NCBI RefSeq assembly: GCF_023055435.1
Contig: NW_025963946.1
Span: forward strand, 7,812,001-7,876,000
Length of the DNA stretch: 64,000 nt
Source: Haliotis rufescens
Lineage: Eukaryota
Reading direction: 5' to 3'
Shown: in pieces, positions 1,905-61,199 of the stretch
How the letters are laid out: each line of letters begins with the position of its first letter
Position numbering within the stretch: position 1 is the first letter of the stretch
Notes under the pieces: model-generated
Databases searched by the model: none
The model's input: the letters and a program-made list of their open reading frames with translations, nothing else
Told to the model about the DNA's origin: nothing
Program-made: the position numbers and the translations under genes

Positions 1905-3763
1905 GGAAGATGCCTCACCTAACGTCCAAGTGGGAGATACAAGAGGGCAACATGAAGCTGATCTACTATGACAGGAACCACATGCTGAATGAGGCTTGTC
2001 GGGAGGGAAAGTTAGAGATAGTAAAGAACATTTTGTCAACTGGTTCTGCAGATATAAATAACAAATCCCAGGGTGGCTGGACACCTGTGCTTCTTGCAGC
2101 CAATACAGGTCGAAAAGACATATTTGATGTGTTGGTGAAGAAAGGGTGCAATCTCTCAGCAGTGTTAGACAACGGCAACAATATCCTTCATGTGTCATGT
2201 TTAAGTGGTAATACTGATATCACAGAATATCTTACAGCAGTAGTCAGTATTGACAGTAAAGGCATGTATGGCAGAACAGCTGTGATGAAGGCGGCGGCTG
2301 TGGGCAATAAAAACGTGTTCGATCTCCTGGTGGGTAAAGGATGTGACCTGTCAGCAGTGGATGATGGAGGTTACAACATCCTTCATCTTGCCTGTTTTAG
2401 TGACAATGTGTACATTGTCGAGCATCTCATCACACACAAGATAGCTGACATAGAGAGCCGAGGCAATTTTGGGAGAACGCCGGTGATGTGTGCATCATGG
2501 GTGGGTCGGCAGAAGGTGTTCGATCTCCTGGTGGGTAAAGGATGTGACCTGTCAGCAGTGGATGATGACGGTAACAACATCCTTCACATTGCCTGTTTTG
2601 GTGGCAATGTGTACATTGTCGAATATCTCATCACACACAACACAGCTGACATAGAAAGCCGAGGCAACTTTGGGACAACACCGGTGATGGCAGCAGCAGA
2701 GAAGGGTCAGCAGAAGGTGTTTGATCTCCTGGTGGGTAAAGGATGTAACCTTTCAGCAGTAGATGGTAAAGGTAACAACATCCTTCACTTTGCCTCTTTT
2801 AGTGACAATGTACACATTGTCGAGTATCTCATCACACACAAGATAGCTGACATAGAGAGCCGAGGCGAGGTAGGGAGAACACCGGTGATGTTTGCAGCAG
2901 AGAAGGGTAAACAGCAGGTGTTCTATCTCCTGGTTGGTAAAGGATGTAACCTGTCAGCAGTGGATGATGGAGGTGACAACATCCTTCACCTTGCCTGTTT
3001 TAGTGACAATGTGCACATTGTCGATTATCTCATCACCCACAACACAGCTGACATAGAGAGCCGAGGCCGGTTTGGGAGAACACCGGTGCTGTTTGCAGCA
3101 GAGACGGGTAAACAGCAGGTGTTCGATCTCCTGGTTGGTAAAGGATGTAACCTGTCAGCAGTGGATGATGACAGTAACAACATCCTTCACCTTGCCTGTT
3201 TTAGTGGCAATGTACACATTGTCGAGTATCTCATCACACACAACATAGCTGACAAAGAGAGCCGAGGCCAGGTAGGGAGAACACCGGTGCTGTTTGCAGC
3301 AGAGAAGGGTCAGCAGAGGGTGTTCGATCTCCTGGTGGGTAAAGGATGTGACCTGTCAGCAGTGGATGATGGAGGTAACAACATACTTCACCTTGCCTGT
3401 GTTAGTGGCAATGTGCACATTGTCGGGTATCTCATCACACACAAGGTAGCTGACATAGAGAGCCGAGGCCGGTTTGGGAGAACACCGGTGATGACTGCAG
3501 CAGAGATGGGTAATCAAAAGGTTTTCGATCTCCTGGTGGGTAAAGGATGTAGTCTGTCAGCAGTGGATGATGACGGTAACAACACCCTTCACCATGCTGC
3601 ATACGCAGGGACAGTAGGAATTGTAAACCGACTTCTCTCAGAGTCAGCTGTAGAAGTATCTGCCACAAACAACAGAGGTGAAACGCCATTGCAGATTGCA
3701 CTGAGATACAACCAAGGCGCTATAGTGAAGATTCTTAGAGCTAGATCTGACACGCTGCTTTGA
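1905..3763 (+). CDS. Ankyrin gene copy 1, terminal exon with about 18 ankyrin repeats (7 near-identical 67-aa double units); upstream exons lie outside the window
   Basis: 617-aa ORF with GRTPV..AA..G and GNNILH.AC motifs. Acceptor atttccag|GG is in phase 1. AATAAA at 3913-3918. Confidence 0.95.
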
Positions 3764-16585: not shown

Positions 16586-17652
16586 GTAATCGAATCTCAG
16601 CAGAAATGTTCCAAACTTCAAGAACTGGCAGCATTTCAAATCTGACAAAGGTGGACGGGCAGACAGTGTTCAGCTCGGATTTCCTGTTGTTTGACGTGAA
16701 GAGTTGCAATGAAGTGCAGTTCGTCATTAACTTCGACGACGGCATGGCAAGGATGGTCATTTATCCGAACAGGAGTTTGCAGGTGGAGTACTGTTACAAA
16801 GGCCCTGATTGTACCGTGGAGATGTTTACAGTAACCGGTGACACGTGCGACGGCTATACACCGTTGTGGGTGCAGGTGCCGATATATGGCGTGGTTATCG
16901 GCGAAGGTTGTGACGTTGAAGAATCCACTCGTCTTCACCATGGCGGATGTTGTTGTATGGAAACACAAGCATCGGAATCTCTTCTGCAGATGATGCTTGG
17001 TGGAGACTGGGTAAAAAAACTCTCATTTTTGCAGAACAAATAACACAGTAGGGCAAATTACTGAGTCAAAATGAATGAATTAAGAACAAACCACTTAATC
17101 CTGATGTATAATGTCAGATATTGTACAATTTACTATAAAATTAATTATCACTTAAACAAAACATGGATAGTGAAAAGTGTTTCCCAAATAAAGTGTGGCT
17201 CTTTGTAACCAGCATGCATGCTTATTCGTATGTTGTTAAAAGCCGCACTACATAGTATTCTAGCAATTTATATCATATAAACGACAAACCTCTCAATCGG
17301 TATAGACATTACACGTAGCTACATCACCGAGTCTGACAACCCGACATATTCAGTTACTTTTCCAAGAACCCCAGTTAACTAAAAGAAAACAGGAGAGTCT
17401 GCGTGTAAACCTGTGGCCACACCAGCTACGACCACCACCTCAACAACACATCCTACAACAACGCCTGCGACGACATCCGAAGCACCAGGGTCTTTAGTGA
17501 ATGATACAACGAGGAATGAAACCATGCATAAAAACGTGAACATGGGGCGATCTGGCGGCGCTGTCTGCAACAACTTTCTGGCTGTGATGACTATGGTTGC
17601 TACGTATGTATTGTGCTATCGAGTTCCATGCAGAGTGAATCAGGCACCATGA
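16586..17652 (+). pseudogene. FAMeT-like domain + Thr-rich stalk + hydrophobic tail gene, copy 1, frameshifted (exons 16586-17010, 17393-17652)
   Basis: Paralog of 47632-48783. The exon is 425 nt, not a multiple of 3. The conserved SIGISSADDAWWRL end lies in a different frame from the upstream ORF (shift within 16921-16968). Could be an assembly error. Confidence 0.7.
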
Positions 17653-24019: not shown

Positions 24020-26377
24020 TTACACAGTTTTACAGTTGTCTGACATTGAGACAGACGTTGACTGTCTCTGTCATGCCACGTGTCAGAGTTACACAGTTTT
24101 ACAGTTATCTGACGTTGAGACAGACGTTGACTGTCTCTGCCATGCCACGTGTCAGAGTTACACAGTTTTACAGTTATCTGACATTGAGACACGTTGACTG
24201 TCTCTGCCATGCCACGTGTCAGAGTTACACAGTTTTACAGTTATCTGACATTGAGACAGACGTTGACTATCTCTGCCATGCCACGTGTCAGAGTTACACA
24301 GTTTTACAGTTATCTGACATTGAGACAGACGTTGACTGTCTCTGCCATGCCACGTGTCAGAGTTACACAGTTTTACAGTTATCTGACATTGAGACAGACG
24401 TTGACTGTCTCTGCCATGCCACGTGTCAGAGTTACACAGTTTTACAGTTATCTGACATTGAGACACGTTGACTGTCTCTGCCATGCCACGTGTCAGAGTT
24501 ACACAGTTTTACAGTTATCTGACATTGAGACACGTTGACTGTCTCTGCCATGCCACGTGTCAGAGTTACACAGTGTTACAGTTATCTGACATTGAGACAC
24601 GTTGACTGTCTTTGCCATGCCACGTGTCAGAGTTACACAGTTTTACAGTTATCTGACATTGAGACAGACGTTGACTGTCTCTGCCATGCCACGTGTCATA
24701 GTTACACAGTTTTACAGTTATCTGACATTGAGACAGACGTTGACTGTCTCTGCCATGCCACGTGTCAGAGTTACACAGTTTTACAGTTATCTGACATTGA
24801 GACACGTTGACTGTCTCTGCCATGCCACGTGTCAGAGTTACACAGTTTTACAGTTATCTGACATTGAGACACGTTGACTGTCTCTGCCATGCCACGTGTC
24901 AGAGTTACACAGTGTTACAGTTATCTGACATTGAGACAGACGTTGACTGTCTTTGCCATGCCACGTGTCAGAGTTACACAGTTTTACAGTTATCTGACAT
25001 TGAGACACGTTGACTGTCTCTGCCTTGCCACGTGTCAGAGTTACACAGTTTTACAGTTATCTGACATTGAGACAGACGTTGACTGTCTCTGCCTTGCCAC
25101 GTGTCAGAGTTACACAGTTTTACAGTTATCTGACATTGAGACACGTTGACTGTCTCTGCCTTGCCACGTGTCAGAGTTACACAGTTTTACAGTTAGCTGA
25201 CATTGAGACACGTTGACTGTATCTGCCTTGCCACGTGTCAGAGTTACACAGTGTTACAGTTATCTGACATTGAGACACGTTGACTGTCTTTGCCATGCCA
25301 CGTGTCAGAGTTACACAGTTTTACAGTTATCTGACATTGAGACAGACGTTGACTGTCTCTGCCATGCCACGTGTCAGAGTTACACAGTTTTACAGTTATC
25401 TGACATTGAGACAGACGTTGACTGTCTCTGCCATGCCACGTGTCAGAGTTACACAGTTTTACAGTTATCTGACATTGAGACACGTTGACTGTCTCTGCCA
25501 TGCCACGTGTCAGAGTTACACAGTTTTACAGTTATCTGACATTGAGACACGTTGACTGTCTCTGCCATGCCACGTGTCAGAGTTACACAGTGTTACAGTT
25601 ATCTGACATTGAGACACGTTGACTGTCTTTGCCATGCCACGTGTCAGAGTTACACAGTTTTACAGTTATCTGACATTGAGACACGTTGACTGTCTCTGCC
25701 ATGCCACGTGTCAGAGTTACACAGTTTTACAGTTATCTGACATTGAGACAGACGTTGACTGTCTCTGCCTTGCCACGTGTCAGAGTTACACAGTTTTACA
25801 GTTATCTGACATTGAGACACGTTGACTGTCTCTGCCTTGCCACGTGTCAGAGTTACACAGTTTTACAGTTAGCTGACATTGAGACACGTTGACTGTATCT
25901 GCCTTGCCACGTGTCAGAGTTACACAGTTTTACAGTTATCTGACATTGAGACAGACGTTGACTGTCTCTGCCATGCCACGTGTCAGAGTTACACAGTTTT
26001 ACAGTTATCTGACATTGAGACACGTTGACTGTCTCTGCCTTGCCACGTGTCAGAGTTACACAGTTTTACAGTTATCTGACATTGAGACAGACGTTGACTG
26101 TCTCTGCCTTGCCACGTGTCAGAGTTACACAGTTTTACAGTTATCTGACATTGAGACAGACGTTGACTGTCTCTGTCTTGCCACGTGTCAGAGTTACACA
26201 GTTTTACAGTTATCTGACGTTGAGACAGACGTTGACTGTCTCTGCCATGCCACGTGTCAGAGTTACACAGTTTTACAGTTATCTGACATTGAGACAGACG
26301 TTGACTGTCTCTGCCATGCCACGTGTCAGAGTTACACAGTTTTACAGTTATCTGACATTGAGACAGACGTTGACTGA
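24020..26377. repeat. 69/67-bp minisatellite, about 35 copies
   Basis: Unit gttacacagttttacagttatctgacattgagaca(ga)cgttgactgtctctgccatgccacgtgtcaga, very homogeneous. Confidence 0.97.
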
Positions 26378-28442: not shown

Positions 28443-29351
28443 ATGAGTAGGGGTGGTGGCAATGGCGGCGATGCAGGTACGTGGCTATGAGAGTCACAGC
28501 AACATTAGGTGACACAAACGATGGTTATTGACAATATAGTGGCTACATCGTCTTCTAACTTGGATCTACCACTCATGTGTTCACTATGGGATTATATGGA
28601 TAACCGTAAGTTGAAGATTGTCATGTATTTATATTGTTTATTTTGACATGACACTAATTTCCAGGTGATTTGTTACAAAAGAAGACAGGTTACGTTACAA
28701 GCCAATTTCAAGGGAAAACTCGGCCGGAGAAGTACTTAACTGTTTGTCATAATAAAATGTCGACCCGTCATAAAGCTTGAATATTGCTGAGTGCGGCGTA
28801 AAACAACCAACCAACCAACCAACCAACATAATCAAATGTCAGATGAAAATAGATCTATATGTTGAAAAGTGTCCAACCAAGTACATGTGTACATGGTGTC
28901 TTGCTAATATGACACTTTATGGGCCTTCAACACGCCACCCAAGTCATGTATATACAACCTTGAACAATATCGACCCAGTTAATCTTAACTTTCTTATGAC
29001 TGCCACCTTGTGGGCTATTTATAGTCAGGGTGGGGCTTTCTTTGACTGTATGTGTGCAGTAAACCGGTTTCAGTGGCCGCGTCATACCAATAACCGGTAC
29101 AGGGGATAACGCAAGGACGATCGGTATGTGTTTGTTGGTATGGTGCGACATGCTATCTCAGACCTGAATTGACTGCCCTCGCTGTTATTCTGCATGGGCC
29201 GCGCCAATAAGAGGATAAGTCGAAAATAATCCTTGACAATTTCTAGTTTGAAATATCTCTTATATGCAATATCACCCAAGTGTTGTACAAGTAAGTAAAT
29301 GTTTTGTCTTCAGAACGTCCATCTGCAAAAGTCCCCTTTAGGAAGTTATGA
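28443..29351 (+). CDS. Predicted upstream coding segment of ankyrin gene copy 2 (exons 28443-28476, 28665-28688, 29314-29351): MSRGGGNGGDAGDLLQKKTERPSAKVPFRKL*
   Basis: Three consecutive GT-AG exons joined in phase 1. The frame ends at TGA 29349-29351, overlapping ATG 29348. Confidence 0.5.
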
Positions 29352-32300
29352 AGAAGAACAGCCCAACACACGTCCCTCCGGACAGAAGAGGAAAAAGACA
29401 TGATGCTCCCTCACCTAAAAAAGCTCACAATCCTGTAGCAGGTAATCTACTCATACTAATCTTATGATACTTTGTTTGTATGGTTATTGTTATCATGATT
29501 ATTTATATATCTGCATGCATTTCCATCTCCTTTCCTCGGCACGGGTGACCCTGTCGTCTAAGGAGCCGCAATTCGCTGTGCAATTCGCGTGGGCTAGAAA
29601 CTTATGATTGTAGGTCCGAATTATGTTTCCAGGTTTGTCAGCACCCAAACCGTGCTTGTGGGTTTCACCAAGGCGGTCAACGTTTGAAATTTGCATCACT
29701 CCCCTGATACACTGTACATGTGATATAACTGGAATATTGTTAAGAGCGGCACTCACTCCGTCTCCTTGTATGTAAGAACTATCATTAACGATATTCCGAT
29801 GACGGCATGGAACAATACCATATACTTTTTATGATATTTGCTGATACAATTCTGTGCAATTCGAACGTGTGATACCCTGATATTTGTCCACAGTTGTGTA
29901 AAAATTAAAAATTGTCGAATGTGTTTATGTCTAACTACTGATACTTCAATATGACAGCCAGTTGAGATTGAAAGACCTATTTTACAGAATCAACAGCTGT
30001 CTCTGTTACTGGCGCTACAGGTGAAAGCAAGGTTAAAAAGCTTGAGGCAATAGGACAGAAGTTTTCCGGAGGTCAAGGTGATGCATGTGTTCATAGTGTC
30101 TCGTCATTACGTTACATCAGTCTGTGGTCGCCGTTGTAAGTTTTAAGCGAAACTGTTAACATTTGTTGCAGCGTGCATACATATCTGTGCATGTGTGGCT
30201 GATTGTACTAATATATACTGGTTTTGTACTAGTCCGTACTAATATATACTGGTTTCATAGTGCTAGCCCGCTGAGATACCATGCCGCAGTTTAACATGGA
30301 TACACCACTCAGATACTGTATACTGACTTTGAGTCGACCAGCCCTTTGTTTTATCCCCTTTATGCCGAGCTCGGGGCAGGGAAACAACAAGTACCATCGT
30401 TTAACGTGTTTTAGTATGACACGGCAAGGGGATCGAAGCACCGAGCTTCCGCTCTCTCGGCAGACGCTCTTTCCACAACACCACGGAGGTGGTCAGGGTA
30501 TTTAGAACCACAACCTCCAGCTTTCGGGCCAGACGTCTTATGAAAAGATAAAATTCTCATTAAAAATTGTTGTGTTGAAATGACGAGTGATATCAATATT
30601 GATGGATATTTCTCTACATACAGACCCTTTGAAAACGTTAAATTTATGCTTCATATACATAGAGTAATCGATAACATGTTTCAGGTAGGAGAAATATGTT
30701 GACAATATTTACCATTTCTATTGGCAGTTGTGTTCATTTCTAGTCTCATGTTCTTGGATCGCGTGACCCATGCAAACCATGATGTTACCTAATTAACTCA
30801 CATGACAGTACTTAATTTCCACTACCAATGGAAAATCATGTATATCATTGAAATCATGTGTAATCAGATGCAGAAGACATTCAGATACTGTACATTAACG
30901 AGGTAAGAACGTACACATTTCAAACCTGTCAAACTATATAGTATTATTCATGTCCACTCTTATATTGCGTTATTTTAATTATAATTTGATTGTTACTGAA
31001 ATTTTGAAAAGTCTACTCTTCTTCTCAGTACAAGGTAGCGTCAGTACGTATACTGGAGATGTCAACGTCAACATCCACAACAGTTCCTCCCGGCCAGGTA
31101 GGATTGGAATAGTTATCGTGATGTGTATGCTACACAAATAGGCGTGACACTACACCACACTACGTTTCATGCCGATTGCACATACCAAGACACGTAGTGC
31201 ATATATGATCGAATACAGAGAAGGATTAGAAAAAGTACATTTCAAGTTACAAGGAAGGAAACTTTAATTTGTTGTGTAATTGGAGGATATTTCATGTGTC
31301 GAGTGAAATACCATGTTTCTCTCATGGAGTGATGAGGGGAAGGGAGATATTTTCACGAGTGGCGTATTTAAGGTCACGAAAATTCTTTATCATACATTTC
31401 GACATGATTATGTACAAAATCAGCCATAAAAAAACATATTCTTGAAAACTAGGAGAACGCTGTTGGAAGCAAAGGAATACACGCTGGTTGGGTAACAGAA
31501 ATGAGAAATCTACAGTTCATACCGAAACGTTTTCGAGAAAATAGCAAACGGCAAGCAGTGATATTAACTCCATAAATAACCATCTTTCATTATTTTGCCT
31601 TGTCAATATGGAACTCGTAGAAAAGGGACATCAAAAGTTTGTATACGGGCCAGACACTGGCGATAAAGTGAGATAATTTAAGGGAATGACAATAGTTCCG
31701 TGAAAGTGTTATGATCAATGCAGTGAAATATCAAGTGTTATGTTCACTGCAATGAAAATATCACGTTTCTCAAATTCAGAATGCTCAGTCTTTTACATTG
31801 ATGTATATAATAATGTTATGGGTTGCGGTTATAGGTTATAGTACACGTTAAAGGTACAAAAAACTGACATGGATAATCGTATATTGCAGATAAGGGGCCA
31901 CACGATCGTTATGAGGCTGATCGTGGACATTTAGTGCCGAATTTATTGGAAGAAAAAGGTAGGCATGTTAAACAGATAACAAAAGGGAGAATTTGGGATG
32001 GTGGAGCATGCATAGTCACCCTGGTATAGTCACAGGGCTGCACAACGTGATTAAAGTTAATATGCAGAATCATTTATTGAAGTTATTTACATCACAAGTG
32101 ACCTTTTAATATGGGAACAATAACAACAACAACAACAACAACAACAACACCAACAACAGAGTCTTAGTTCATCAGCGTACCGATACCTGTACACACAATC
32201 ATGATTAACAGGACGAAGTTGATGTTACTTAGTATGTGAAATATATGAACAATTATACTTCATTTTCCGTTACGGGGATGAAAGGCGGAGAAATAATTGA

Positions 32301-35300
32301 AACTGTTTAACGAAAATACTACTACGACTTTTCAATACAAACACACACGAAAGACGACCTGGAGGTGTTCTGCGGTTGGGGGGATAGTGTTACTGTTAAC
32401 AAGAGATAAAGTAGTCACACCACTCAACAACCTGATGAACTGGGTCAGACGCACCTAAAATGCTGACTTGGAAAGTGTGGAAGACGGAAGTTTGATATTT
32501 GTATTTATGCACGAAACTGAAGAAGACGCTCTGAGGATGATGAGGGACCAAACATAAGTCAAGCCTCTGCTTCTGGGATTTATTCACACAATAATTACCA
32601 GTGTCAAAGATATCGAAATAAATGTTGAAATGCGAAAAACAAATCAATCAACAAATCCAGTTGAATCAGGTAAATTTTTTCCAAGGATATAATTACATGT
32701 TTGAATATAGATTTACCAAAAGTGAATATCTGTATTATCTCAAGTGTTGAAGTACAAGTATTATTTTTGGTCTCGTTCATTTTTCTAGAACTTGAAGATC
32801 TTCACATAGACTGTGAGACTGGACTGAAGGTATGTTTTCCCTAACGACTGTTGATAGTGTGTTCAATATTTGTATGCTATGTCTTATGTACTATGGATAT
32901 TATATATTATATTATTACAAAGTAACATTAAGTTCTTTGTTAGATTTTGAATAAGTTACAGCATGTATATACTGTTTTTAGTTTTGAAAAAATATGATGT
33001 GGAATATCATTTACTTACACATTTGTAAGTTTATCTAAAATTTGTTTCAGCTTCGTGAACGTCTTGATGCCATGCAGCAAAGGATAACAGACTTGGAGCG
33101 AAGAGTGTTGAAGCTCGAGAAAGATGCAGAAGCAGGTACACACGCTTGTGTTTGTATTCACTCTGTTCCTTCAGTAACTGACAAACAGTACGATTGAATG
33201 ACCCTGATAAAAACAACTTGCGTGGTGCATAATCAGGTCAAGTTATCTGTTTTTCAGAAACCAGGATGTTGCCTTGGATGCGATCTGACGCCAGCGGACA
33301 CTGTGAGTGTATATGCCAGCTATTTTGACGTTGGGTTGGGCTACCATTGATGAGGACACGCATCTTAATTTCTATTTAAATCCACGCCCTGAAATTGCAG
33401 ATATCACATTGCAGAGTGTATGTCCTTGCAACGAACAAAGAAAACACATCCTCATACATGGCACAATGTTACCCAAAATGAAACATTTTCTTCTGTTGTT
33501 ATTCATGTGTCCCCAGTTTAACCATCATATGCACGTAATGTTAATCGATGTGTGACCGTTTGGTGTCAGTATGACATGCGCTGATGGAATAGATAACATA
33601 CATTCCATACTCTGGACAAAAACTATAATTGTCTCTGACCGTGTCACTCAACCACTCAACCATGCACTGGTGTCAAGTTAATGCACTCTTGTGGGTTTAA
33701 ACTATAAGCTTTAATACATTTTAAACAACCAGTTATATGTCTGTTTTAAATACGATATTGAACATTTTCTCTCAGAAATTCAGCTGTTATGTCAATGGTA
33801 TTTTTTTTGTCACCACACATTTATGAAGCATCCAAGATAATTGATCTTATATAGAGACGTACATGCACGTGTGTGTGTGTGTGGCTGCTTGTACTTGTCC
33901 GGACTGATGCCGATTTATAGTGCTAGCCCACTGATATACCATGCCGCAGTTTAACTTGAATACCCCATTCAGCCACAGTATACCGACCAGTCCTTGTTTA
34001 AGCGTCAGACAGGGTAACAACAAGTACCATCTATCTAACATGTTTAGTATCACGCGGCCGGGGATCGAAACCCGGACCTTCCGCTCTCCGGGCGTACGCT
34101 CTACCACTGGACAACGGAGGCGGTCGTCACGTACAGACAAATAATAGTAACGTCACAGAACGAAGCGATTTTAAATACAGAATCATAAGTGCATCTTTCT
34201 TGTCATGCCGTAACATTCTACGTGAGGGGATAACAAATGGTTTTCCATCATACATCTAAACTATTCCAGAATCCAACGCCACTTCTCTAAGTTTAAGCAA
34301 TACGGAAAGATACATTTCTTACACAGTACTTTAGGACACTAGTTGACGTTGTTGTTCTATTTTGCTTGTGTCTTGATTGCTGATGAGGATCGTGAACGGA
34401 ATACACAGCCATAAACACCGGTGTTTTTGTGTGCATGTATTTGTAGCTTAAATATAGTTATTTTCAAACAGTTTGATGTTTGTTTTCAGATTCAGCTGAT
34501 GACGATACAGAGTCGGTTTCAGACGCAGTTTCAGAAGGTGGACACAGGTTGGACACAGAAGGTGGGATTTACAGCTACATATATTATTCCTTAACAAATC
34601 AAGACTCTTTTTTTCCGATAGCATGTCATGGAAGTGATTAATACATTGAACTGTATTTGCATGTCCAGTTCGCAGTTCCTTTTCATGAGCTGATATGTCG
34701 TGCATGTTGTCGCAGGAAGATTAAATATTAACTTACATAGATAGGAAACATATATTGCTTAGTTTCCTCTCAGGAGAAGAATAAGGATATATGAACATGT
34801 TGTAGAGAGAGTTAGCAGCTTTACTGCTTAGTTTACCCTTTGGGGTCGAAATCACTTGTATGTAGATGTTACAAGTGTTTGCATACACATTGCCAAGTTC
34901 ACCCTAATGAATTATTATAAAGGCATAGTCTTATATTTTGTTCAATTTAATAGTGGGTTGATTTTGAACTCACATGCTGATATGACGCTGTGATGACAAG
35001 ATTGACTTGGCATGAACACTGACATGTGTTTTTCATGCATTGGAACTACCAGATGCTAGGGTGCTATACTTACAAAATGTTATGGTCGTTTATTTGTGTC
35101 TCCTAAATTATAAATTATTTGACGATTACAACTAGATACAAATGACATCATTCAATTATCATTACAAATGGTCTAATGGACCCCTGTGTTTACAAGTATC
35201 TACAAACTTATTAGTATAGTATGTCCACGGATAAATGTTTCGCGTGACTGATAAAACATATGAAATTAATTTCAGCCGCTTATATAGTTATTTCCAAAGA

Positions 35301-37134
35301 AAATGTTTTAGCATATCCAGTTTGTCTAAGATATTCATAAATCAAGAAGTAATAAGAACGACCGATAGCCGTCAGTTTGCCTCTGTCCATTCGACCAATC
35401 CGATTATAGGAAACTCTTAGTCAACTGAAACAAAGTATCAGACGCAAAATTAAACTGTATTTTTTGTCAGTTCAGCAGTATTCTGTTTCCGAGGAAACAT
35501 ATCCCCTTTTTCTTGTGATTGATAATAAGAATATTTTCTGGAGCCCATCTTAACAAACATTCTCAACCGTTGAGTAACGATGCTTATGCGTTGACAATGT
35601 ATGTCAGCCCTTAGATTCTTAAGTCAGAAAGGGACATTTACAAACATTCTATTTCAAATGCACTTGACAATTTCCAGGGAAGATGCCTCACCTAACGTCC
35701 ATGTGGGAGATACAAGAGGGCAACATGAAGCTGATCTACTATGACAGGAACCACATGCTGTATGAAGCTTGTCGGGAGGGAAAGTTAGAGATAGTAAAGA
35801 ACATTTTGTCAACTGGTTCTGTAGATATAAATAACAAATCCCAGGGTGGCTGGACACCTTTGCTTCTTGCAGCCAGTACAGGTCAAAAAGACATATTTGA
35901 TGTGTTGGTGAGGAAGGGGTGCAATACCTCAGCACTGTTAGACAACGGCAACAATATCCTTCATGTGGCATGTTTAAGTGGCAATACTGATATCATAGAA
36001 TATCTTACAGCAGTTGTCAGTATTAACAGTATAGGCATGTATGGCAGAACAGCTGTGATGAAGGCGGCGGCTATGGGCAATAAAAACGTATTCGATCTCC
36101 TGGTGGGTAAAGGATGTAACCTGTCAGCAGTGGATGATAAAGGTAACAACATCCTTCACTTTGCCTGTTTTGGTGGCAATGTGCACATTGTCAATTATCT
36201 CATCAAACACAATATAGCTGACATAGAGAGCCGAGGCCAGGTAGGGAGAACACCGGTGCTGTTTGCAGCCGAGATGGGTCAAAAGCAGGTGTTCGATCTC
36301 CTGGTGTGTAAAGGATATAACCTGTCAGCAGTGGATGATAAAGGTAACAACATCCTTCATCTTGCCTGTTTTAGTGACAATGTGTACATTGTCGAGTATC
36401 TCATCACACACAAGATAGCTGACATAGAGAGCCGAGGCCAGGTAGGGAGAACACCGGTGCTGTTTGCAGCCGAGATGGGTAAACAGCAGGTGTTCGATCT
36501 CCTGGTGGGTAAAGGATGTAACCTGTCAGCAGTGGATGATACAGGTAACAACATCCTTCACCTTGCCTGTTTTAGTGACAATGTGTACATTGTCGAGTAT
36601 CTCATCAAACACAATATAGCTGACATAGAGAGCCAAGGCCAGGTAGGGAGAACACCGGTGCTGTTTGCAGCAGAGAAGGGGAAACAGCAGGTGTTTGATC
36701 TCCTGGTGGGTAAAAGATGTAACCTGTCAGCAGTGGATGATAAAGGTAACAACATCCTTCACCTTGCCTCTTTTAGTGGCAATGTGCACATTGTCGAGCA
36801 TCTCATCACACACAAGATAGCTGACATAGAGAGCCCAAGTTTGGTAGGGAGAACACCGGTGATGTTTGCAGCAGGGCAGGGTAAACAACAGGTGTTCGAT
36901 CTCCTGGTGGGTAAAGGATGTAACCTGTCAGTAATGGATAATGAAGGTAACAACATCCTACACCTTGCTGCATTCACGGGGACAGTAGGAATTGTAAACC
37001 GAGTTCTCTCAGAGTCAGCTGTAGAAGTATCTGCCACAAACAACAGAGGTGAAACGCCATTGCAGCCTGCACTGAGAAACAAACATGGCGCTATAGTGGA
37101 GATTCTTAGAGCTAGATCTGACACGCTGCTTTGA
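29348..37134 (+). CDS. Ankyrin gene copy 2, predicted 673 aa: exons 29348-29441, 29988-30077, 31029-31097, 31890-31958, 32789-32829, 33051-33135, 33258-33302, 34490-34561, 35678-37134. Low-complexity N-terminus, coiled coil, about 14 ankyrin repeats
   Basis: All exons have canonical AG/GT, are open and join with compatible phases (total 2022 nt). 33051-33135 encodes the heptad segment LRERLDAMQQRITDLERRVLKLEKDAEA. The terminal 483-aa ankyrin ORF is certain; the small exons are predictions. AATAAA at 37285-37290. Confidence 0.75.
29537..29758 (+). mobile_element. SINE family D, degenerate and intronic
   Basis: ggcacgggtgaccctgtcgtctaagg head, similar to 47020-47278, with an actcactc tail. Confidence 0.75.
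30165..30494 (-). mobile_element. SINE family A, intronic
   Basis: Matches 5864-6218 (ctgagataccatgccgcagtttaacat..., ccacggagg.ggtc). Confidence 0.85.
31270..31815. mobile_element. Putative non-autonomous element, Crypton-like
   Basis: Motifs gagtgaaata, atattttcacgagtggcg, gcagtgaaatatc...ttcactgc and a tgtatataataa end, recalled from molluscan non-autonomous Cryptons. Not verified. Confidence 0.35.
32117..32158. repeat. (CAA)n microsatellite
   Basis: Direct reading. Confidence 0.9.
32276..32669 (+). pseudogene. Dead internal exon of ankyrin gene copy 2, TRADD-N-like domain
   Basis: Pyrimidine tract then CGG instead of CAG (32273-32275); intact donor G|gtaaat. TAA at 32308, 32456 and 32555 plus one frameshift. 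Encodes ...NADLESVEDGSLIFVFMHETEEDALRMM... Confidence 0.65.
33828..34125 (-). mobile_element. SINE family A (paralog of 88-386)
   Basis: Same position within the duplicated intron. Confidence 0.85.
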
Positions 37135-37777: not shown

Positions 37778-39031
37778 TAGATACGCACGTCACCCCCTGT
37801 CACATCTGATCTCTATGAAGGAGATACGCTCACCACACCGTGTGACATCTGGTCTGTTTGAGGGAGGTACGCACGTCAATCCCTGTCACAACTGGTCTGT
37901 ATGAGAGGGATACGCACATCACACCCTGTCACAACTGGTCTCTATGAAGGAGGTCACACCCTGTTACCTGATTTTCATCGAAGAAATACCCACATCACAC
38001 CCTATCACATCTGTTCTGTATGAGGAAAATACGCACATCACACCCATTTACATCGGTTCTGTATGAGGGAGATACGCACATCACACCCTGTCACATCTGG
38101 TCTGTATGAGGGAGATAAGCACATCACACCCTGTCACATCTGGCCTGTATGAGGGAGATACGCACATCACACCCTGTGACATCACTTCTGTATGAGGGAC
38201 ATACGCACCTCACACCCTGTCAAATCTGCCATGTTTGAGTGAGATACGCACGTCACACCCTTTCACATCGGTTCTGTATGAGGGAGACACGCACATTACA
38301 CACTGTAAATTCTGATCTGTTTGAAGGAGATACGCACATCACACCCTGTCAAATCTGGTCTATATGAGCGACGATCGCACGTCATACCCTTTAAAATCTG
38401 TCCTGAGGGAGATACTCACATCACACACTGTCACATCGGTTCTGTATGAGGGAGACACGCACGTCACACCCTGTCACATCTGGCCTGTATGAGGGAGATA
38501 CGCACGTCACACACTGTCACATCGGTTCTGTATGAGGGAGACACGCACATTACACCCTGTCAAATCTGGTCTATATGAGCGACGATCGCACGTCATACCC
38601 TTTAAAATCTGGCATGAGGGAGATACGCACGTCACACACTGTCACATCGGTTCTGTATGAGGGAGACACGCACATCACACCCTGTCCAATCTGGTCTATA
38701 TGAGCGACGATCGCACGTCATACCCTTTAAAATCTGGCCTGAGAGAGATACGCAAGTCACACACTGTCACTTCGGTTCTGTATGAGGGAGATACGCACGT
38801 CACACACTGTCACATCTGGTCTGTATGAGGGAGATACGCACGTCACACACTGTCACATCGGTTCTGTATGAGTGAGACACGCACATCACACCCTGAAAAT
38901 TCTGATCTGTTTGAAGGAGATACGCACATCACACCCTGTCAAATCTGGTGTATATGACCGACGATCGCACGTCATACCCTTTCAAATCTGGCCTGAGGGA
39001 GATACGCACATCACACACTGTCACATCGGTT
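37778..39031 (+). repeat. 43-bp satellite array, short paralogous copy (~1.25 kb)
   Basis: Same monomer and same 5' flank as 4697-12585. Confidence 0.95.
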
Positions 39032-47631: not shown

Positions 47632-48783
47632 GTAATCGAATCTCAGCAGAAATGTTCCAAACTTCAAGAACTGGCAGCATTTCAAATCTGACAAAGGTGG
47701 ATGGACAGACAGTGTTCAGCTCGGATTTCCTGTTGTTTGACGTGAAGAGCTGCAATAAAGTGCAGCTTCGCATAAATAGCGAATCAAGCTTGGCAGTTAT
47801 TGAGATTTATCAAAACATGACTTCTCACGTGCAGCTCTGTTACGATAAAGTCAATGGTAAATGCATTGCAGAGATGTTTGCTGTGACTGGTGACCTGTGT
47901 GGCGGCTATACACCCATATGGTTGCAGATGGCACCACCTTCACTCATTATCGGTGAAGGCTGTGACGTTGGAGAATCCAAACTTTACTCATACCCACTGA
48001 TGTTCTTTGACATAACGCTCGACATTAAAAGCATCGGAGTCTCTTCGACAGATGATGCCTGGTGGAGACTGGGTAATTATGTTTTTACCAACAGTTGAAC
48101 AGTGGAAAAAAATACAGCTCTTTATAACTAACACAATGTGTCAGTAGGTTTATTTGTTAGTTGATTAACGCCGCACGAAACAATATTATAGATATATGGT
48201 TCACAAAACATCGGGTGTAGAATTGGTCTTCCGCAACCTAGGCGACTATGCTTGTCCTTTGAGGCCACTAACGGGATCAGGTGGTCATGCTGACATGGTT
48301 GATGTATGTCATCGTATCCCAATTGCATGGATCGATACTCATGATATCAATCACTGTATTGTCTGGTGCAGACTCGATTATCTTTAGACCGCCGTCATAT
48401 AGCTGGAATATTGCTGAGTGCGGCGTTAGACAACAAACAAACATAGAGCCATGCCGTATCGTGTGATATAACTTAAATGTGTCAATGAACTACAACATTA
48501 GTCATATTTTACATTAGCAAAGTTTGATGTGTTTCAATGCTGGTTGACTACAGGGGAATCTGCGTGTCGACCTGTGACCACACCAGCTAATACCACAACG
48601 TTGACAACACAACCGAGGACATCCGAAGTACCCTTGGCGAATCATGCAATGATGAATGAAACCATGCATAAGTACATGAACATGGGGCGATCTGGCGGTG
48701 CTGTCTGCAACAACTCCCTGACTGTGATGACCATGGTTGTTACGTATGTATTGTGCTGTCGAGTTCCATGCAGTGTGAGGTAG
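47632..48783 (+). CDS. FAMeT-like domain + Thr-rich stalk + hydrophobic C-terminus gene, copy 2, intact (exons 47632-48072, 48554-48783); first exon not located
   Basis: 441-nt phase 1-1 exon with FDVKSCN, YTPIW, IIGEG and IKSIGVSSTDDAWW, resembling the Methyltransf_FA domain pattern. The next exon joins in phase (GESACRPVTTPANTTT...LTVMTMVVTYVLCC). The domain name is by recall. Confidence 0.75.
48213..48442 (+). mobile_element. SINE family B, intronic
   Basis: cagactcgattat..agaccgccgtcatatagctggaatattgctgagtgcggcgtta 3' half. Confidence 0.8.
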
Positions 48784-55194: not shown

Positions 55195-55592
55195 TCAATC
55201 CACGGACACCAGGAACCCACCAAAAGATGATGCTGGTGAACTTCGATCGATTTTGATTGACTGGGTTGTCTCCACCCACACCTGTTCACCCTTGAGGATG
55301 GGGGCAACGGAAAATGCAGCCGAGTGGTCGCTGCCCGTCTTTGCTGTCCCGAACCCGATTATGGTGGAGCCAGTTTTCATTATATGGATGTACGTGCCGA
55401 ATGGGTTGGACACCTTCAATGCTAGATTTGTGTAGAACATGTAGGTTCCAGAGACTGGCGCGGTGAACTTCCCTGTGTTCTCGTCATAGCAGGAGTCTAC
55501 ATTGTAGACAGTGAAGTCAAAGATAAGCGGGGGTCCGATGGCTGTGTCAGGTGGACTCTCTGTGCGGAAGGCAACAGTTCTTGTCTTTGACG
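55195..55592 (-). CDS. C1q globular-domain exon (phase-1 acceptor)
   Basis: VAF...LIFD...YDENTGKFTAPVSGTYMF...GEQVWV...SSFGGFLV is a canonical gC1q pattern. Acceptor catgcag|CG. Confidence 0.93.
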
Positions 55593-57421
55593 CTGCATGG
55601 ATTGAAAGCAACACTTACCAATGGACAAACTAAACATCATGATATAATACGACTTCGTCATATATTTATGCACAATTGCGGCCTGTTCTCAACGAACAAT
55701 GTATGCATTTATCGAATCTAAAGACCGTTATAAAGGAGGCTTCATCTGCATAATGTTTTCCTGGGTGGTGGGAGAAACGTGGGAGAAAAGTCATTGAAGC
55801 TACTAGTCATTCCGGATGTATTTGAAATGGCACGCGAAAGTCGATTCTAGTACTGGTGATATCATCGTTTGTTGCAATCGTGGAGGAACAGCAATTGATT
55901 GGTTAACAATGTTTTACTTGACTGGCAAACATGTAAAAACACCATACGGTCGGCAGTCGAATTGGAATTAAAATTGCAAAAGTGCTGGTTGTAGTTAAAG
56001 TACATTAAACGATTAAAAAAGCAAGCAGCCTTATTGCCATCATACTCTATCAGCCCATTTACTTTACGGACCTCGAAAATTGCCCTATGCCCGAGACACT
56101 ATTATTTGTTTATTGAAAAAGATTCGACTGGAACCAAAGGACATGCCTGTGCTCATAATGCTCAGTTTCGTCCACATTTGTGAAAGTTAGGCTCAGTGGA
56201 TCTGGAAACTAACTCATTAACATATAAACGCCTTAAAGTGAATGTGTTTACAACCAAACAGATTGTTACACATGAACCGTCATTAAGTGCAGATTGTTGC
56301 CTGAGTATTAAGATACAGGTAGGGAATTCAATATGCTACCAGGTGTTTCCTGTTGTGTTTGAGACGGAAAACAACGAGACGAACCGGATATATATTGACT
56401 CTTGTTTCAGTTTTACAACAGTGAATTTATGTCACAGTATTTCTCTCATAAGTGGATGTAGTAAGTGAAGTAGGTTTTAAGTAGTGGCATATAGTAATGG
56501 GACATAACTAGGGCGAAACTGAGATTCAAACTCACAATAGAACCTCAGCAAGGACGCAACCTGATTCTGCAAATTGACGCGACTTATATAACTAGGTCAC
56601 CAGTAGACGGTAGTGAAGACAGGCGGAAGTGAAGCCCGAAAGCATAATGCGGGAGGAAACCCAAAGTGATGCAGGTATCATATGTTTGGCCCTGGTATTT
56701 TGGCAACCTGAGGGTCAAAATTGGTCAAAAGGATTATGCTCAACCATTTTCGAAAGAATGATTTAGTAGAGAGTCATCATACTGACATTACTTAATATTA
56801 TGTAAGTATTTTGTCAAGAGATTATGATTATTCGTATTCATCGTCAAAAAGCGACCTAGGCATTAATAAAATTGACAGATGGGGGCGCTTAGTGAAGTCA
56901 ACCAGGAAGTTAAATTTGTTGTCGGAGAAGGAGCGGTAGTGAACAACCATAGTTCAAACGTAGACTGAACTCAGAACTGTTTCGATAATAGTTAAGTCAA
57001 TACAAACATGCTGCACAATAATACCTATGGCCAGTTTACTATATTTTGGTCAGGGTGCCAAGCCAATCATTTCCTGCTTTAAGTTGATTGATAGGGTAGT
57101 TGTTGGGCCTTTGCTAGTTCGGGTGATTATAGTTGTTAAGAAGTGTAGAGAGGTAAATAGTTGAATATTCCTGATTAAAAAAAATATTTGTTCACTATCT
57201 TTGTTGATGATACTTTACACTTCAGTTATGCCGATGGCAGCTAATAATAGTTCAAAATGCCATTGCCATGTTGTCACAAGCAAAGAACTGATAGTTCGAG
57301 CAATTGTTACAATAACATACACCCCTAATTGTGCCTATCAACATTCTCTTTTGAAGCTTGAAAAGGGATCACAGCAATCGTGCAAGCTGAAGTAATATCA
57401 CGCTGAAAATACACGACTTAC

Positions 57422-58338
57422 CAACATCAATCATCATCTTGTATGACTTGTGACAGCGACTTGGTGTTGCCCAGAGACTGCTTCTGTACACTAGACATGT
57501 CACGTTGCAAACCTGCCACTTCTGAGCTTGTGAAACTGATATTATACTGTGCTGTGTGTAGATTATCCTTGACTGTCTGAAGACCTTGTTGAACATTGCG
57601 CATATCAACGGTTGTTTGGTTCATTTCTGTCCCAAGTCTTTCCAGCTGTTTTGACGCATTTTGTAACACTTCTTTTGTGGACACCATGTCCGTGATCTCA
57701 ACCAGCAACTGGTTTGTAATGATTTTGATGGACGATGACGTATTTCGGATGAAACCCTCTTCTTCATTCTTGACATCATACAGTGTAGAGTTTACTCGAT
57801 GCAGCTGTTTATCTAACGCCGAAACATCTGATTGTACTACATTTACCTGCACGGAGTTCTGCTTGATATTGCGACTCATAGAGTCCATCGTGAGGTTCAA
57901 CAGAAAGTTAGCATTAAGTTTATCCAGTTTCAAGTCTCTCAGTTCAGACTTCACCTGGTTCAACTCATTCGAAGACAACTTCAGTTCAGCCTTCAGCATT
58001 GCCATCTCAGACTTCAGAGAGGTAATTTCAGCACTGGCCAATTGTTGTAGGGATTGGCTTGTTTGTAAGTCTGTTTGGGTGTTCTGTAGAACTGTTTTTG
58101 TGGTTTGCAGCTCTGTTTTTGTACTCTGTAGATCTTGTTTTGTTACCTGTAGATCTGTTTGCAGCTTCCCTGTGGTTGTCTTAAAGCTAGTCATGGACTG
58201 TTCAAGCAATACGACGTGACTCAGTACACTGGAGAGATCAGCACTGCCATCTGGCTTTGTCATGGGTAAAATTAGTCCTGAGACAGAGCAATATAGCAAA
58301 ATACATAGGAATAAGGTCTGCATTGTAGCTTGTGTCAT
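57422..58338 (-). CDS. Signal peptide + long coiled-coil exon of the C1q-domain gene; stop at 57429-57427 precedes the donor
   Basis: MQTLFLCILLYCSVSG is signal-like and is followed by heptads (LQTDLQVTKQDLQSTKTELQTTK). Donor G|gtaagt after 57422. The ORF-track start at 58446 is probably too far upstream. Confidence 0.85.
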
Positions 58339-61199
58339 TGTAAGAGACTGCTCAACATAGAGGCATTTCGCACTTTTATCTTGAATTTCAAGATAATGTA
58401 ACACGGACACTCCTTTGGCACAAATACGAGGCCAAGAATAGTCCATATTTCATGTTTCCATTATCTATTGCAAAAGCAAAACTCTGACATTTGCTGAATG
58501 TATGTGCGAGATTATTCCATTTATTGTGACAATGAAGATGATGACCCAGCCAGCAGAAATAGATGCCGAATTATAAGTAGTATCATTATCGTAAGAATCA
58601 GCTATGTGGTAGCCCAGCTTTACAAGTCATGTCTTGCAACATCATATTTTTCATATGTTCTTATCAGAATCGGTCGTGTGGGTGGGTGCCACGCACAGAT
58701 ATCGTAGATGCGTAGACGTTGTCGGACTGTCCTTGTCGATATGTATCAATGGATTCTAAGGGCTGTGAGAATTGCTCTCCTGAGCTTGTCTTGTCGAGGG
58801 GTTGACATGGGTGGACGGCCACTACAGGGGCGGTCTCTGACGTGGTTTTCCTGTTGATAACGTCCCATATGGTGTACCTGTGGACGTTGAATTGAAGTGT
58901 GGCGTTGCGCTGCGTGGAACATGATGCACTCATTTCTATGTCATTTAAGCTTAGGTGTGAATGGAGAGGAATCTCACCCACACATTCAAAAGTAGTATAT
59001 TTATGCACTTTCAAAGCTGCTAATGCCTGGTGTCATCGCTGGTTTTCAGTGATCTATACAATTTTCGCAGCTAATATGTCTGTCATGCCCTATGGATTGA
59101 TTGTATTCTTTGATGTTGAGGTGGTGTTTTTGTTTTTGTTTTGTTTTGTTTTTTATATTAGAGAGGTACTGATTTTAGTTTGGTTATCTGACCTGATTCA
59201 GAGAACATTTAATACAATTGTCTACGGATATTCATTGTTTCCTACAAAAAAAAACATGAAATACCGCCAACATTTCTTTGGATGTGTTTCATCTAACTTA
59301 TTTAGAAACATTTTTCATGGTTCATGAGTGTAAAGAATCCACATCACAATATCTTTTGATTTTTGTATAATATATTTATCAGACGAAAACACGTACTCCG
59401 CATCCCTATTTATATACCTATGTATTATATATATACATATATAAATACATGGTGAAGATGGAATCCATATGAGACAAGTGAGTGACAAAGTTGGGGTACA
59501 AGCATTGTTAATGTTTTTAAACACTTAAATCCAAGCAGATACATTTCAAAGCAGTCGAAAGGAAACATAGCCCAAACTGCTGAAGAACTTAAATATTTGT
59601 GGTAGCGTGAACTCTTAAACATAAGTGAGAAATATCTTTTTTATCGCTCGGCACCATCTGTTGTGTCTCAGACTGTCCTAAATTTTCACTGAACCTAAAT
59701 TTATGATACTGGGTTAAGGCGTAAATACTCAACACGTAAATAAAAAGTGTCTGCAAGATTGAAGAATAGCAGAGATAATAGTCTCTCCTGGTGATAATAT
59801 ATCATCATAGAATACCCAATTATGACAACGCTAAAGGTAAAAGTTTGGGTGACGGAAGATGGCAACTTAGTTGGCTGATGAAAAGACATTTACAACCTTC
59901 AAATACATTTATGTTTACCATGTGAAAACAGGCCTTGGAGAAATACAAGCACCACCACACAGAATCAGATTGTTCCAGTCTCATCGGCACCGCCTTCGCA
60001 AGAAACCCTCCTCAGTGTGTACTTGATTTAGTAGAAGATGACTTCGGACATACATATGAAGAGGACATTGACTGTTTTCCTGCCAGAAAATAAAAATGAA
60101 ACACTCGAAAGAAAACTGAACAGAATTTAAAAAGAATCAAAACGTACCTGTCTGTCTTTTTGTACAAATTCCTGATAGGTGTTAGGAAGGTCGTCGGGTC
60201 GGAATATGAATGGCAATGCAACAGTGGATTTCGATTAAGTATTGACAGGGCGCTCAACTAGCCTGACTATGGCTGCACATAGTAGGATTCACATCAATTT
60301 GTCAAATTCTGTGAAATTAGTAAATCCAATACCAAGTCCCTGACTTTCTAGAAAAAGGAATCCTGATTGGACTTATCCAATAACTCCCAATGAAACCCAG
60401 AAACTAAGAGTTGTTAGCCAACTTGGTTTCAAGACATTCTGAAAACTTTATGGCGGAACAAGATTGTTTATTTTTAATACTCCAACCCATTGAATCACAA
60501 AGGCAAATGAATAGGGGTGATGTTACTGTTGAACACAACTTTCAAAAAGAGAATATCTGGAGTACGTCAGAAGACAGACAACATAACGTACAGCACGCCA
60601 TCACCAAAAGCATTGGCCTTGAAATGTTTCCTGTCAGTCTGTGCAAGGTCTAGAGGGATTTGTGGCCTCAACCCGTTTTAATCATGACGACACTTTCTAT
60701 CTTGCCATATATACCACAAGCTATCCTTAACTCTGCGATGCATGGTTCAAAGGACAGCCTGTAGGCAAAAAGAATTTTGGCTTCTGAAGAAAAACATGGT
60801 CGGTGAGGCAAACATCACCACAAGCCAGCGGCTGACGAACCAGAATGCCAGGAACCATATGATCCAGTCGTTGTCACACCAAATAACGCAATAATACGGA
60901 CTTAGAACTATCCATATCCTCAATTTGTATTCACAAATCACTGATCTGACATGCTACATAATCCTCAAGTCATCTGACATGTAGTTCATTTCCGCCACAT
61001 CCTCGCACACTCATGGTGTTTCTATGACAAGGGGGGCATCATCGACTTTGATAGTCAGTGTTTGTGAGTCTGTTCAGGGTGGAGCATTCCACGTTCATAT
61101 TAACAACGCCACTTCTGCTCCGCCAATCACTGCCACCCGATCCCACAAGTCGCCTCCTACAACAAACATGATAGTCATAATCAATTGATAAAATGATGG

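Follow-up and report, generated by a model that had tools for sequence, protein, structure and literature searches.

An Abalone Ankyrin-Repeat Gene Built From In-Phase 201-bp Cassettes With a Variable Predicted Binding Face

Organization of the Ankyrin Locus

We analyzed a stretch of 64,000 nucleotides from the red abalone Haliotis rufescens (contig NW_025963946.1, positions 7,812,001 to 7,876,000; hereafter the window), which contains the 3' part of an ankyrin-repeat gene, here called gene A, whose final coding exon carries an array of similar 201-bp cassettes. A preliminary description of this array had proposed a recombination-diversified, intracellular recognition protein resembling designed ankyrin repeat proteins (DARPins). 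The window showed neither a stretch of N nor any sequence of human appearance, and Haliotis rufescens RefSeq proteins fit the locus at 100% identity. Gene A corresponds to the NCBI model XP_046365241.2 (P0145, isoform X1) of 943 amino acids. The C-terminal 617 residues of this isoform are exactly the open reading frame (ORF) in the window, and the ATG at position 1910 is therefore internal. Approximately eight further exons were placed upstream by tblastn of isoform X2 (P0005), mostly before the start of the window; those ahead of 742–819 lie approximately 0.4–4.2 kb upstream of it. The gene model is that of the database proteins. The features of gene A within the window are:

742–819, + strand: last upstream coding exon, an acidic Ser/Asp/Glu linker (residues 302–327 of P0005; tblastn)
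1905–3763, + strand: large ankyrin exon (acceptor AG at 1903–1904; ATG 1910 an internal Met of the 943-aa protein; stop codon at 3761–3763)
2315–3520, + strand: six full double-ankyrin cassettes, A1–A6 (Tandem Repeats Finder, unit parsing, selection statistics)
3119–3319, + strand: cassette A5; the 201 nt absent from isoform X2 can be placed here, among other positions
3521–3763, + strand: hybrid seventh cassette and stop codon (unit parsing)

Ankyrin repeats run end to end across the 617-codon frame at 1910–3763 (Pfam Ank_2 PF12796, E 7.8e-101; Ank PF00023, E 1.2e-90). Tandem Repeats Finder reports a 201-bp period at 2315–3597 with 6.4 copies, 88% matches, zero indels and a score of 1929. Translation and unit parsing resolve this into six full units of 67 amino acids (residues 136–537 of the ORF), each consisting of two ankyrin repeats of 34 and 33 residues, all in phase and every one within the single exon. 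The seven units counted in the preliminary description thus reduce to six, since the seventh is a hybrid of a cassette-like first half and the C-terminal cap. The DNA strings that it quoted for a near-invariant framework do recur in every unit. The variable residues that it listed (NF/NF/EV/RF/QV/RF and others) are all present as well, except that its first pair, MY, sits in the non-cassette repeat before A1. Nearest-neighbor cassettes differ at 7–15 of their 67 residues (78–90% amino acid identity); at the DNA level, the cassettes are 88–92% identical.

Structural modeling with AlphaFold (AF2) predicts the ankyrin part of gene A to form a continuous solenoid of 18 regular helix pairs, with a predicted local distance difference test score (pLDDT) of 88.3. 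In HMMER alignments, the repeats match ankyrin-R/B (4rlv, E 4e-83), the best solved relatives by sequence, and DARPin entries including 5le2 (E 6e-57); DARPin chains are among the best matches in the PDB.

Gene A is one of three tandem duplicates, together with gene B (P0015, 650 aa, exons at 29348–37134) and gene C (P0042), which lies approximately 19 kb beyond the window. The number of full internal cassettes is six in gene A, four in gene B and two in gene C. Synonymous divergence (dS) within the trio is 0.04–0.07 in the cap regions, and the non-coding flanks are 92.5–94.7% identical.

Isoform X2 of gene A is shorter than isoform X1 by exactly 201 nt. The missing segment has 32 equivalent placements, with the first deleted base at 3118–3149. 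Canonical or cryptic splicing was rejected as its origin, as none of the 32 placements (0/32) has GT-AG ends. The remaining origins are an allele with one cassette fewer in the animal that supplied the RNA and an artifact of template switching. Both readings would imply, indirectly, that gene A transcripts exist, and the loss of one cassette hints at within-species variation in cassette number.

Variation and Selection at the Predicted Binding Face

DARPin libraries were reportedly randomized, by Binz and colleagues in 2003 (Binz et al. 2003), at repeat positions 2, 3, 5, 13, 14, and 33. We fixed these positions of each repeat as the test set before looking at the variation, giving 12 codons per cassette against the remaining 55. 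We verified the repeat register against ankyrin-R/B and DARPin chains in HMMER alignments and against the AlphaFold helices; the statistics for the trio cover its 12 internal cassettes (6 + 4 + 2).

Mean amino acid entropy was 1.05 bits at the 12 codons and 0.38 bits at the other 55 (Mann-Whitney p 5e-4), which bears out the earlier observation that variation clusters at hairpin tips and helices. The most variable positions are 3, 5, 10, 13, and 14 of the first repeat and 2, 3, 10, 13, 14, and 16 of the second, corresponding to the hairpin tips and the inner helix. The pairwise ratio of non-synonymous to synonymous divergence (dN/dS, or omega) was 2.85 in the test set versus 0.68 elsewhere, and the minimum numbers of non-synonymous and synonymous changes were 28:3 and 42:20, respectively. 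From these change counts, with silent sites specific to each partition, omega was 2.4 versus 0.64 (Fisher p 0.02); measured against the pooled silent rate, the same counts show an excess of non-synonymous change with a Poisson p of 8.5e-4. A recount across 20 arrays (see below), again with a pooled silent rate, gave 1.88 (Poisson p 0.0012) versus 0.65 for the framework.

At the predicted binding face, amino acid change therefore outpaces silent change, and the framework is conserved. The variation is neither evenly spread nor mostly synonymous: omega at the binding codons is 1.9–2.9 depending on the estimator, against 0.6–0.7 elsewhere, and an independent array agrees. These values are consistent with positive selection at positions that modeling places on the concave face. 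The preliminary description had largely equated the variable sites with the DARPin positions on that face, and for the predicted face and the mainly non-synonymous nature of the changes this is supported; strong variation is also seen outside the DARPin set, at position 10 of both repeats, at position 16 of the second repeat and at a one-residue insertion at unit position 43.

Sister Cluster and Genome-Wide Arrays

The closest relatives of the trio are two genes, D and E, on another contig (C594), with 13 and 6 cassettes. Within the region C594:30452001-30481000 (L032, L033), gene D forms a 1096-codon open frame with its 13 cassettes; the second gene, with six, has one internal TAG and one cassette that is shorter by a codon. 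A copy of the N-terminal domain described below lies upstream of this cluster at C594:30482718-30482927. For D and E, pairwise dN/dS was 4.1 at the binding codons versus 0.44 elsewhere; omega by counts with partition-specific silent sites was 2.4 versus 0.54 (Poisson p 0.004), and 1.85 (p 0.0004) in the 20-array recount with the pooled silent rate. The D/E arrays are an independent replicate of the selection signal in the trio.

Of the ankyrin loci that scored best in the genome, nearly all hold arrays with a 195- or 201-bp period, with 2 to more than 22 copies that are mostly 87–94% identical. Omega at the binding codons exceeded that of the framework in 20/20 arrays (medians 1.07 and 0.46), and was significantly above 1 in four, including A/B/C and the sister cluster. 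The A/B/C family is among the clearest cases of this genome-wide cassette architecture.

Exchange and Turnover of Cassettes

The preliminary description regarded the array as recombination-diversified, and the distribution of variants supports this. The paralogous ORF at 35683–37134 (gene B) has four full units and shares variants with gene A, such as the QV-LF-EK/EM combinations, as had been noted before. A four-gamete test on 22 informative biallelic sites found 103 incompatible pairs out of 231, and 17 out of 45 when both sites are synonymous. As recurrent selection cannot explain incompatibility between synonymous sites, these 17 pairs indicate exchange of segments. The incompatible fraction rises with distance, from 0.30 at ≤30 nt to 0.48 at >90 nt (permutation p 0.022), and the trend is similar in the arrays D, C35a, and L008. 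A neighbor test resembling the pairwise homoplasy index (PHI) showed no signal among the 12 cassettes (p 0.5). We conclude that cassettes exchange segments with each other, with moderate support for recombination, because the cruder neighbor test is null while the near/far contrast is positive.

Cassette identity is 0.88–0.92 within a local cluster, 0.74–0.76 between sister clusters and 0.57–0.66 beyond, showing that cassettes are concerted at the level of the gene cluster. In the young trio, cassettes are no closer within a gene (0.88–0.92) than between genes (0.88–0.89), and dS between cassettes (0.12) exceeds dS between paralogs (0.04–0.07). The term "homogenized," used in the preliminary description, is thus appropriate for local gene clusters and not for the single genes of the trio.

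Cassettes are gained and lost in register. Besides the different numbers in A, B, and C, we identified four relatives in H. cracherodii with 3–7 internal cassettes. At the edges of the gene C array, the cassettes are near-identical to their H. cracherodii counterparts (2–6 of 67 residues differ), while the internal number is two in gene C and three or seven in the counterparts. Each germline ORF is complete and in frame, and tblastn and blastn searches of the 108 kb around the locus found no ankyrin cassette outside the three ORFs, donor or silent ones included.

The Upstream Module and Predicted Localization

The gene had been described from its ankyrin exon alone (2245–3660), and the notion of an ankyrin-only gene has to be abandoned: exons upstream of that interval encode an N-terminal module. 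It opens with a disordered segment, followed by a brief conserved motif rich in Gly and Ser, a single-exon domain, a coiled-coil-like stretch (with weak Pfam coiled-coil matches only) and the acidic linker. The domain spans approximately 100–134 residues and is encoded at L036:8459-8860, upstream of the window. It is modeled by AlphaFold as a ferredoxin-like alpha/beta sandwich (pLDDT 82.8). A HMMER search of 1.84 billion representative proteins recovered 16 representative clusters; members were looked up for seven of the 16, and all are from Haliotis. Several of the clusters are fused to ankyrin repeats, and two tandem copies of the domain are common (relatives P0121–P0136). The H. rufescens genome holds at least 22 matches.

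The domain has no Pfam match at E up to 1, PF09034 (TRADD-N) included. Foldseek found nothing at E 0.001 or better in PDB and BFVD, the ESM Atlas gave no usable match, and a VIA-wide structure search returned generic ferredoxin-like folds only, with a top Z of 7.0. Identity with TRADD-N was rejected, as its structure (1f2h) scores Z 5.7 amid the crowd of ferredoxin-like folds in that search; likewise, a kinship with nucleotide cyclases or retron components was dismissed as noise.

The Gly/Ser-rich motif reads approximately [IV]-T-G-[AM]-x-G-x-S-x-[AV]; after it, hydrophobic residues alternate around G-D-V. The motif occupies residues ~38–75 of gene A (upstream of the window) and, in gene B, the exon at 29987–30106. 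It precedes the N-terminal domain in the gene A family and in the distant domain relatives P0122, P0129, P0131, P0132, and P0135. One may speculate that it resembles a beta-strand-forming signaling motif.

No transmembrane segment or signal peptide was found in gene A. Its N-terminus does not resemble a signal peptide, and hydropathy over 19 residues peaks at 1.56, which makes the intracellular, probably cytosolic location suggested in the preliminary description plausible. Its statement that no NACHT or STAND domain is visible extends to the full-length proteins P0005, P0015, and P0002, in which Pfam searches at E up to 1 found no NACHT or other STAND domain and returned only ankyrin families and the weak coiled-coil matches.

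Paralogs and Genomic Neighborhood

The remaining features of the trio, and the satellite next to gene A, are:

29348–29440, 29987–30076, 31025–31096, 33045–33140, 33254–33301, and 34492–34569, + strand: upstream exons of gene B (tblastn of P0015)
32269–32668, + strand: broken N-terminal domain exon of gene B, with a frameshift and two TAA codons, skipped by the NCBI model
35678–37134, + strand: ankyrin exon of gene B, with a 483-aa ORF from 35683 (exon start by analogy with gene A)
36088–36891, + strand: four full 201-bp cassettes of gene B, B1–B4 (Tandem Repeats Finder 36091–36968, 92% matches)
C168:7891951-7892348 (contig of the window, beyond its end): broken N-terminal domain exon of gene C, with a frameshift and two TAA codons
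4186–12972, no strand assigned: 41/43/44-bp satellite directly downstream of gene A, approximately 187 copies

The ankyrin exons of B and C have stayed open despite their broken domain exons, and within the trio only gene A has an intact domain exon. Because B and C have lost the N-terminal module and look partly relaxed, gene A is likely the functional member.

The 41–44-bp satellite also directly follows gene B, at 37779–39027 (approximately 30 copies). It shows a higher-order structure of 111/154 bp, and the orientation of its units flips at 12584. Between A and B, a 67-bp minisatellite at 24020–26376 has 35 copies with 96% identity and a higher-order period of 339 bp. Two similar ORFs of 145 and 148 aa, at 16606–17043 and 47652–48098, each lie downstream of one ankyrin paralog; they have no Pfam match, and the pair belongs to the duplicated segment. 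Beside the ankyrin cluster, a gene with a C1q domain is found on the - strand at 55195–58446. Its ORF at 57427–58446 opens with a sequence resembling a signal peptide and contains a long coiled-coil neck rich in Gln, Thr, and Leu, and the ORF at 55195–55614 matches the Pfam C1q domain (E 1.2e-18); together they probably form a two-exon C1q-domain-containing gene.

Discussion

We consider it probable that gene A belongs to an abalone-specific germline family of probably cytosolic, diversifying ankyrin-repeat binders. The solenoid is built from in-phase, two-repeat cassettes of 201 bp within one exon, which are gained or lost in register and swap segments. In the mechanism that we propose from these data, the predicted contact residues, at hairpin tips and on inner helices, would be under pressure to keep changing specificity; pathogens or selfish elements would be the most likely opponents. 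The Gly/Ser motif, the ferredoxin-like domain and the coiled-coil-like stretch upstream would supply oligomerization or output. A receptor role, and one in immune recognition in particular, is putative. More tentatively, and with considerable doubt, we suggest that abalones hold a germline repertoire of natural DARPin-like binders, in which cassettes of 195 or 201 bp would number in the hundreds, spread over dozens of loci. Such a repertoire might provide intracellular immune recognition without a nucleotide-oligomerization domain (NOD), signaling via the ferredoxin-like domain, the Gly/Ser-rich motif and the coiled coil, by analogy with the repeat domains of fungal NOD-like receptors (NLRs).

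The main rival, which we judge rather unlikely, is relaxed constraint in young, partly decaying duplicates, where the fold would fix the framework and the exposed positions would drift with no selection for new specificities. Several observations fit this and weigh against diversifying selection: overall cassette dN/dS is 0.87–0.97; cap omega is 1.0–1.8 for the paralog pairs that include gene B; the domain exons of B and C are broken, and both genes carry framework-breaking substitutions (C2, for example, loses the TP proline and has a core Ala changed to Glu); and binding-codon omega lies near 1, not above it, in 16 of the 20 arrays. As B and C have lost the module, have broken framework positions and show cap omega at or above 1, relaxation may account for part of the variation pooled over the trio. 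The statistics also compare paralogous cassettes, not orthologs, by counting methods; the cassette pairs are non-independent, recombination breaks tree assumptions, and there are few synonymous counts within the 12 codons (3–4 minimum changes). The lack of an informative structural relative for the N-terminal domain likewise counts against the proposed explanation. Drift, however, predicts an omega near 1, and yet 1.9–2.4 was observed, significantly so in two independent clusters; the value is 2.0 for gene A by itself and 4.7 for the intact 1096-aa array of gene D, and all long ORFs are still open.

The same diversifying regime could also arise from a non-immune conflict, either in gamete or other reproductive proteins or with intragenomic elements such as transposons and satellites. 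The sequence signature is silent on which ligand drives it, a large satellite follows each paralog, and abalone reproductive proteins are classic fast evolvers; direct recognition at the gamete surface is nevertheless argued against by intracellular ankyrin repeats without a signal peptide, and we hold this explanation to be improbable. The automatic NCBI names (protein phosphatase 6 (PP6) regulatory ankyrin subunit-like, i.e., ANKRD28/44/52, and ANKRD50-like) and the kinship with ankyrin-R/B would suggest an ankyrin protein of the usual scaffolding or regulatory kind, which binds a conserved partner in the cell. This is very improbable given that 117 of the 120 best protein matches to gene A are named Haliotis (the other three are nameless), that the N-terminal domain is confined to so few clusters with all seven looked up from Haliotis, that paralogs and sister species vary in how many cassettes they carry, and that conservation is lowest on the binding face. 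Somatic assembly or conversion from silent donors, as in lamprey variable lymphocyte receptors (VLRs) or chicken immunoglobulins, can hardly be entertained for germline ORFs that are already complete, with zero cassettes beyond the three ORFs in 108 kb.

Animals that lack adaptive immunity are considered to broaden their recognition through expanded families of C1q proteins, fibrinogen-related proteins (FREPs), Toll-like receptors (TLRs) and NLRs. If our interpretation of a diversifying binder family is correct, natural ankyrin arrays resembling a DARPin library would join these recognition families as a new scaffold. The finding offers concrete sites for testing, approximately 8–10 positions per 67-residue cassette, and the natural variable positions could inform binder design. 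The abalone ankyrin expansion, so far described in vague terms and associated with how well aquaculture stocks withstand disease and heat, would also gain a defined gene structure open to long-read genotyping.

Comparison With Known Systems

Lamprey VLRs are leucine-rich repeat proteins, secreted or membrane-bound, that are somatically assembled from flanking donor cassettes. The abalone genes share with them a solenoid repeat scaffold with variable residues on the concave face; unlike VLRs, they have complete germline ORFs, no donors within 108 kb and no signal peptide. The likeness to DARPins lies in the fixed framework and in variation at repeat positions 2, 3, 5, 13, 14, and 33. DARPins, however, come from synthetic libraries with 2–3 internal repeats, whereas the abalone proteins are natural, have approximately 17–18 repeats alternating between 33 and 34 residues, and vary additionally at positions 10 and 16.

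Within abalones, an expansion of PF12796 genes with clustered duplicates has been reported for H. gigantea Chr9 and the H. midae transcriptome, with a suggested link to defense (PMC12627906 and references therein), and the abalone ankyrin expansion has been loosely tied to defense or stress (PMC12627906; PMC5405107; PMC11806381). The gene A family shares in this genus-wide expansion, for which the accounts that we searched give domain counts only; in the literature that we searched on abalone ankyrins, we found no description of intragenic cassettes, of selection on the binding site or of the N-terminal module.

The closest described system is that of the fungal NLR repeats. The ANK, TPR, and WD repeats of fungal NLRs (Podospora HET-E/NWD; PNP_UDP-NACHT-ANK) are near-identical, polymorphic in number and subject to exchange (Dyrka et al. 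2014, PMC4986451), and positive selection acts on few concave-face ANK positions of the inner helix and hairpin (PMC4986451). The abalone genes are alike in their near-identical intragenic repeats, number variation, exchange and apparent selection on the concave face. Highly internally conserved repeats make up only 0.8% of metazoan ANK/TPR/WD repeats (PMC4986451), and the amino acid identity of the abalone cassettes, approximately 78–90%, lies around or below the 85% cut-off (≥100 aa) of that study. Number variation in abalone is seen between paralogs and species, whereas in fungi it is a polymorphism. The abalone genes further differ in lacking NACHT or NB-ARC, in their animal host, in the two-repeat unit of 201 bp and in an N-terminal domain found only in abalone. 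Because no NOD domain was found, they act like fungal repeat domains without being NLRs and, if our reading holds, would represent an animal counterpart of the fungal mechanism of conserved repeats with a variable face.

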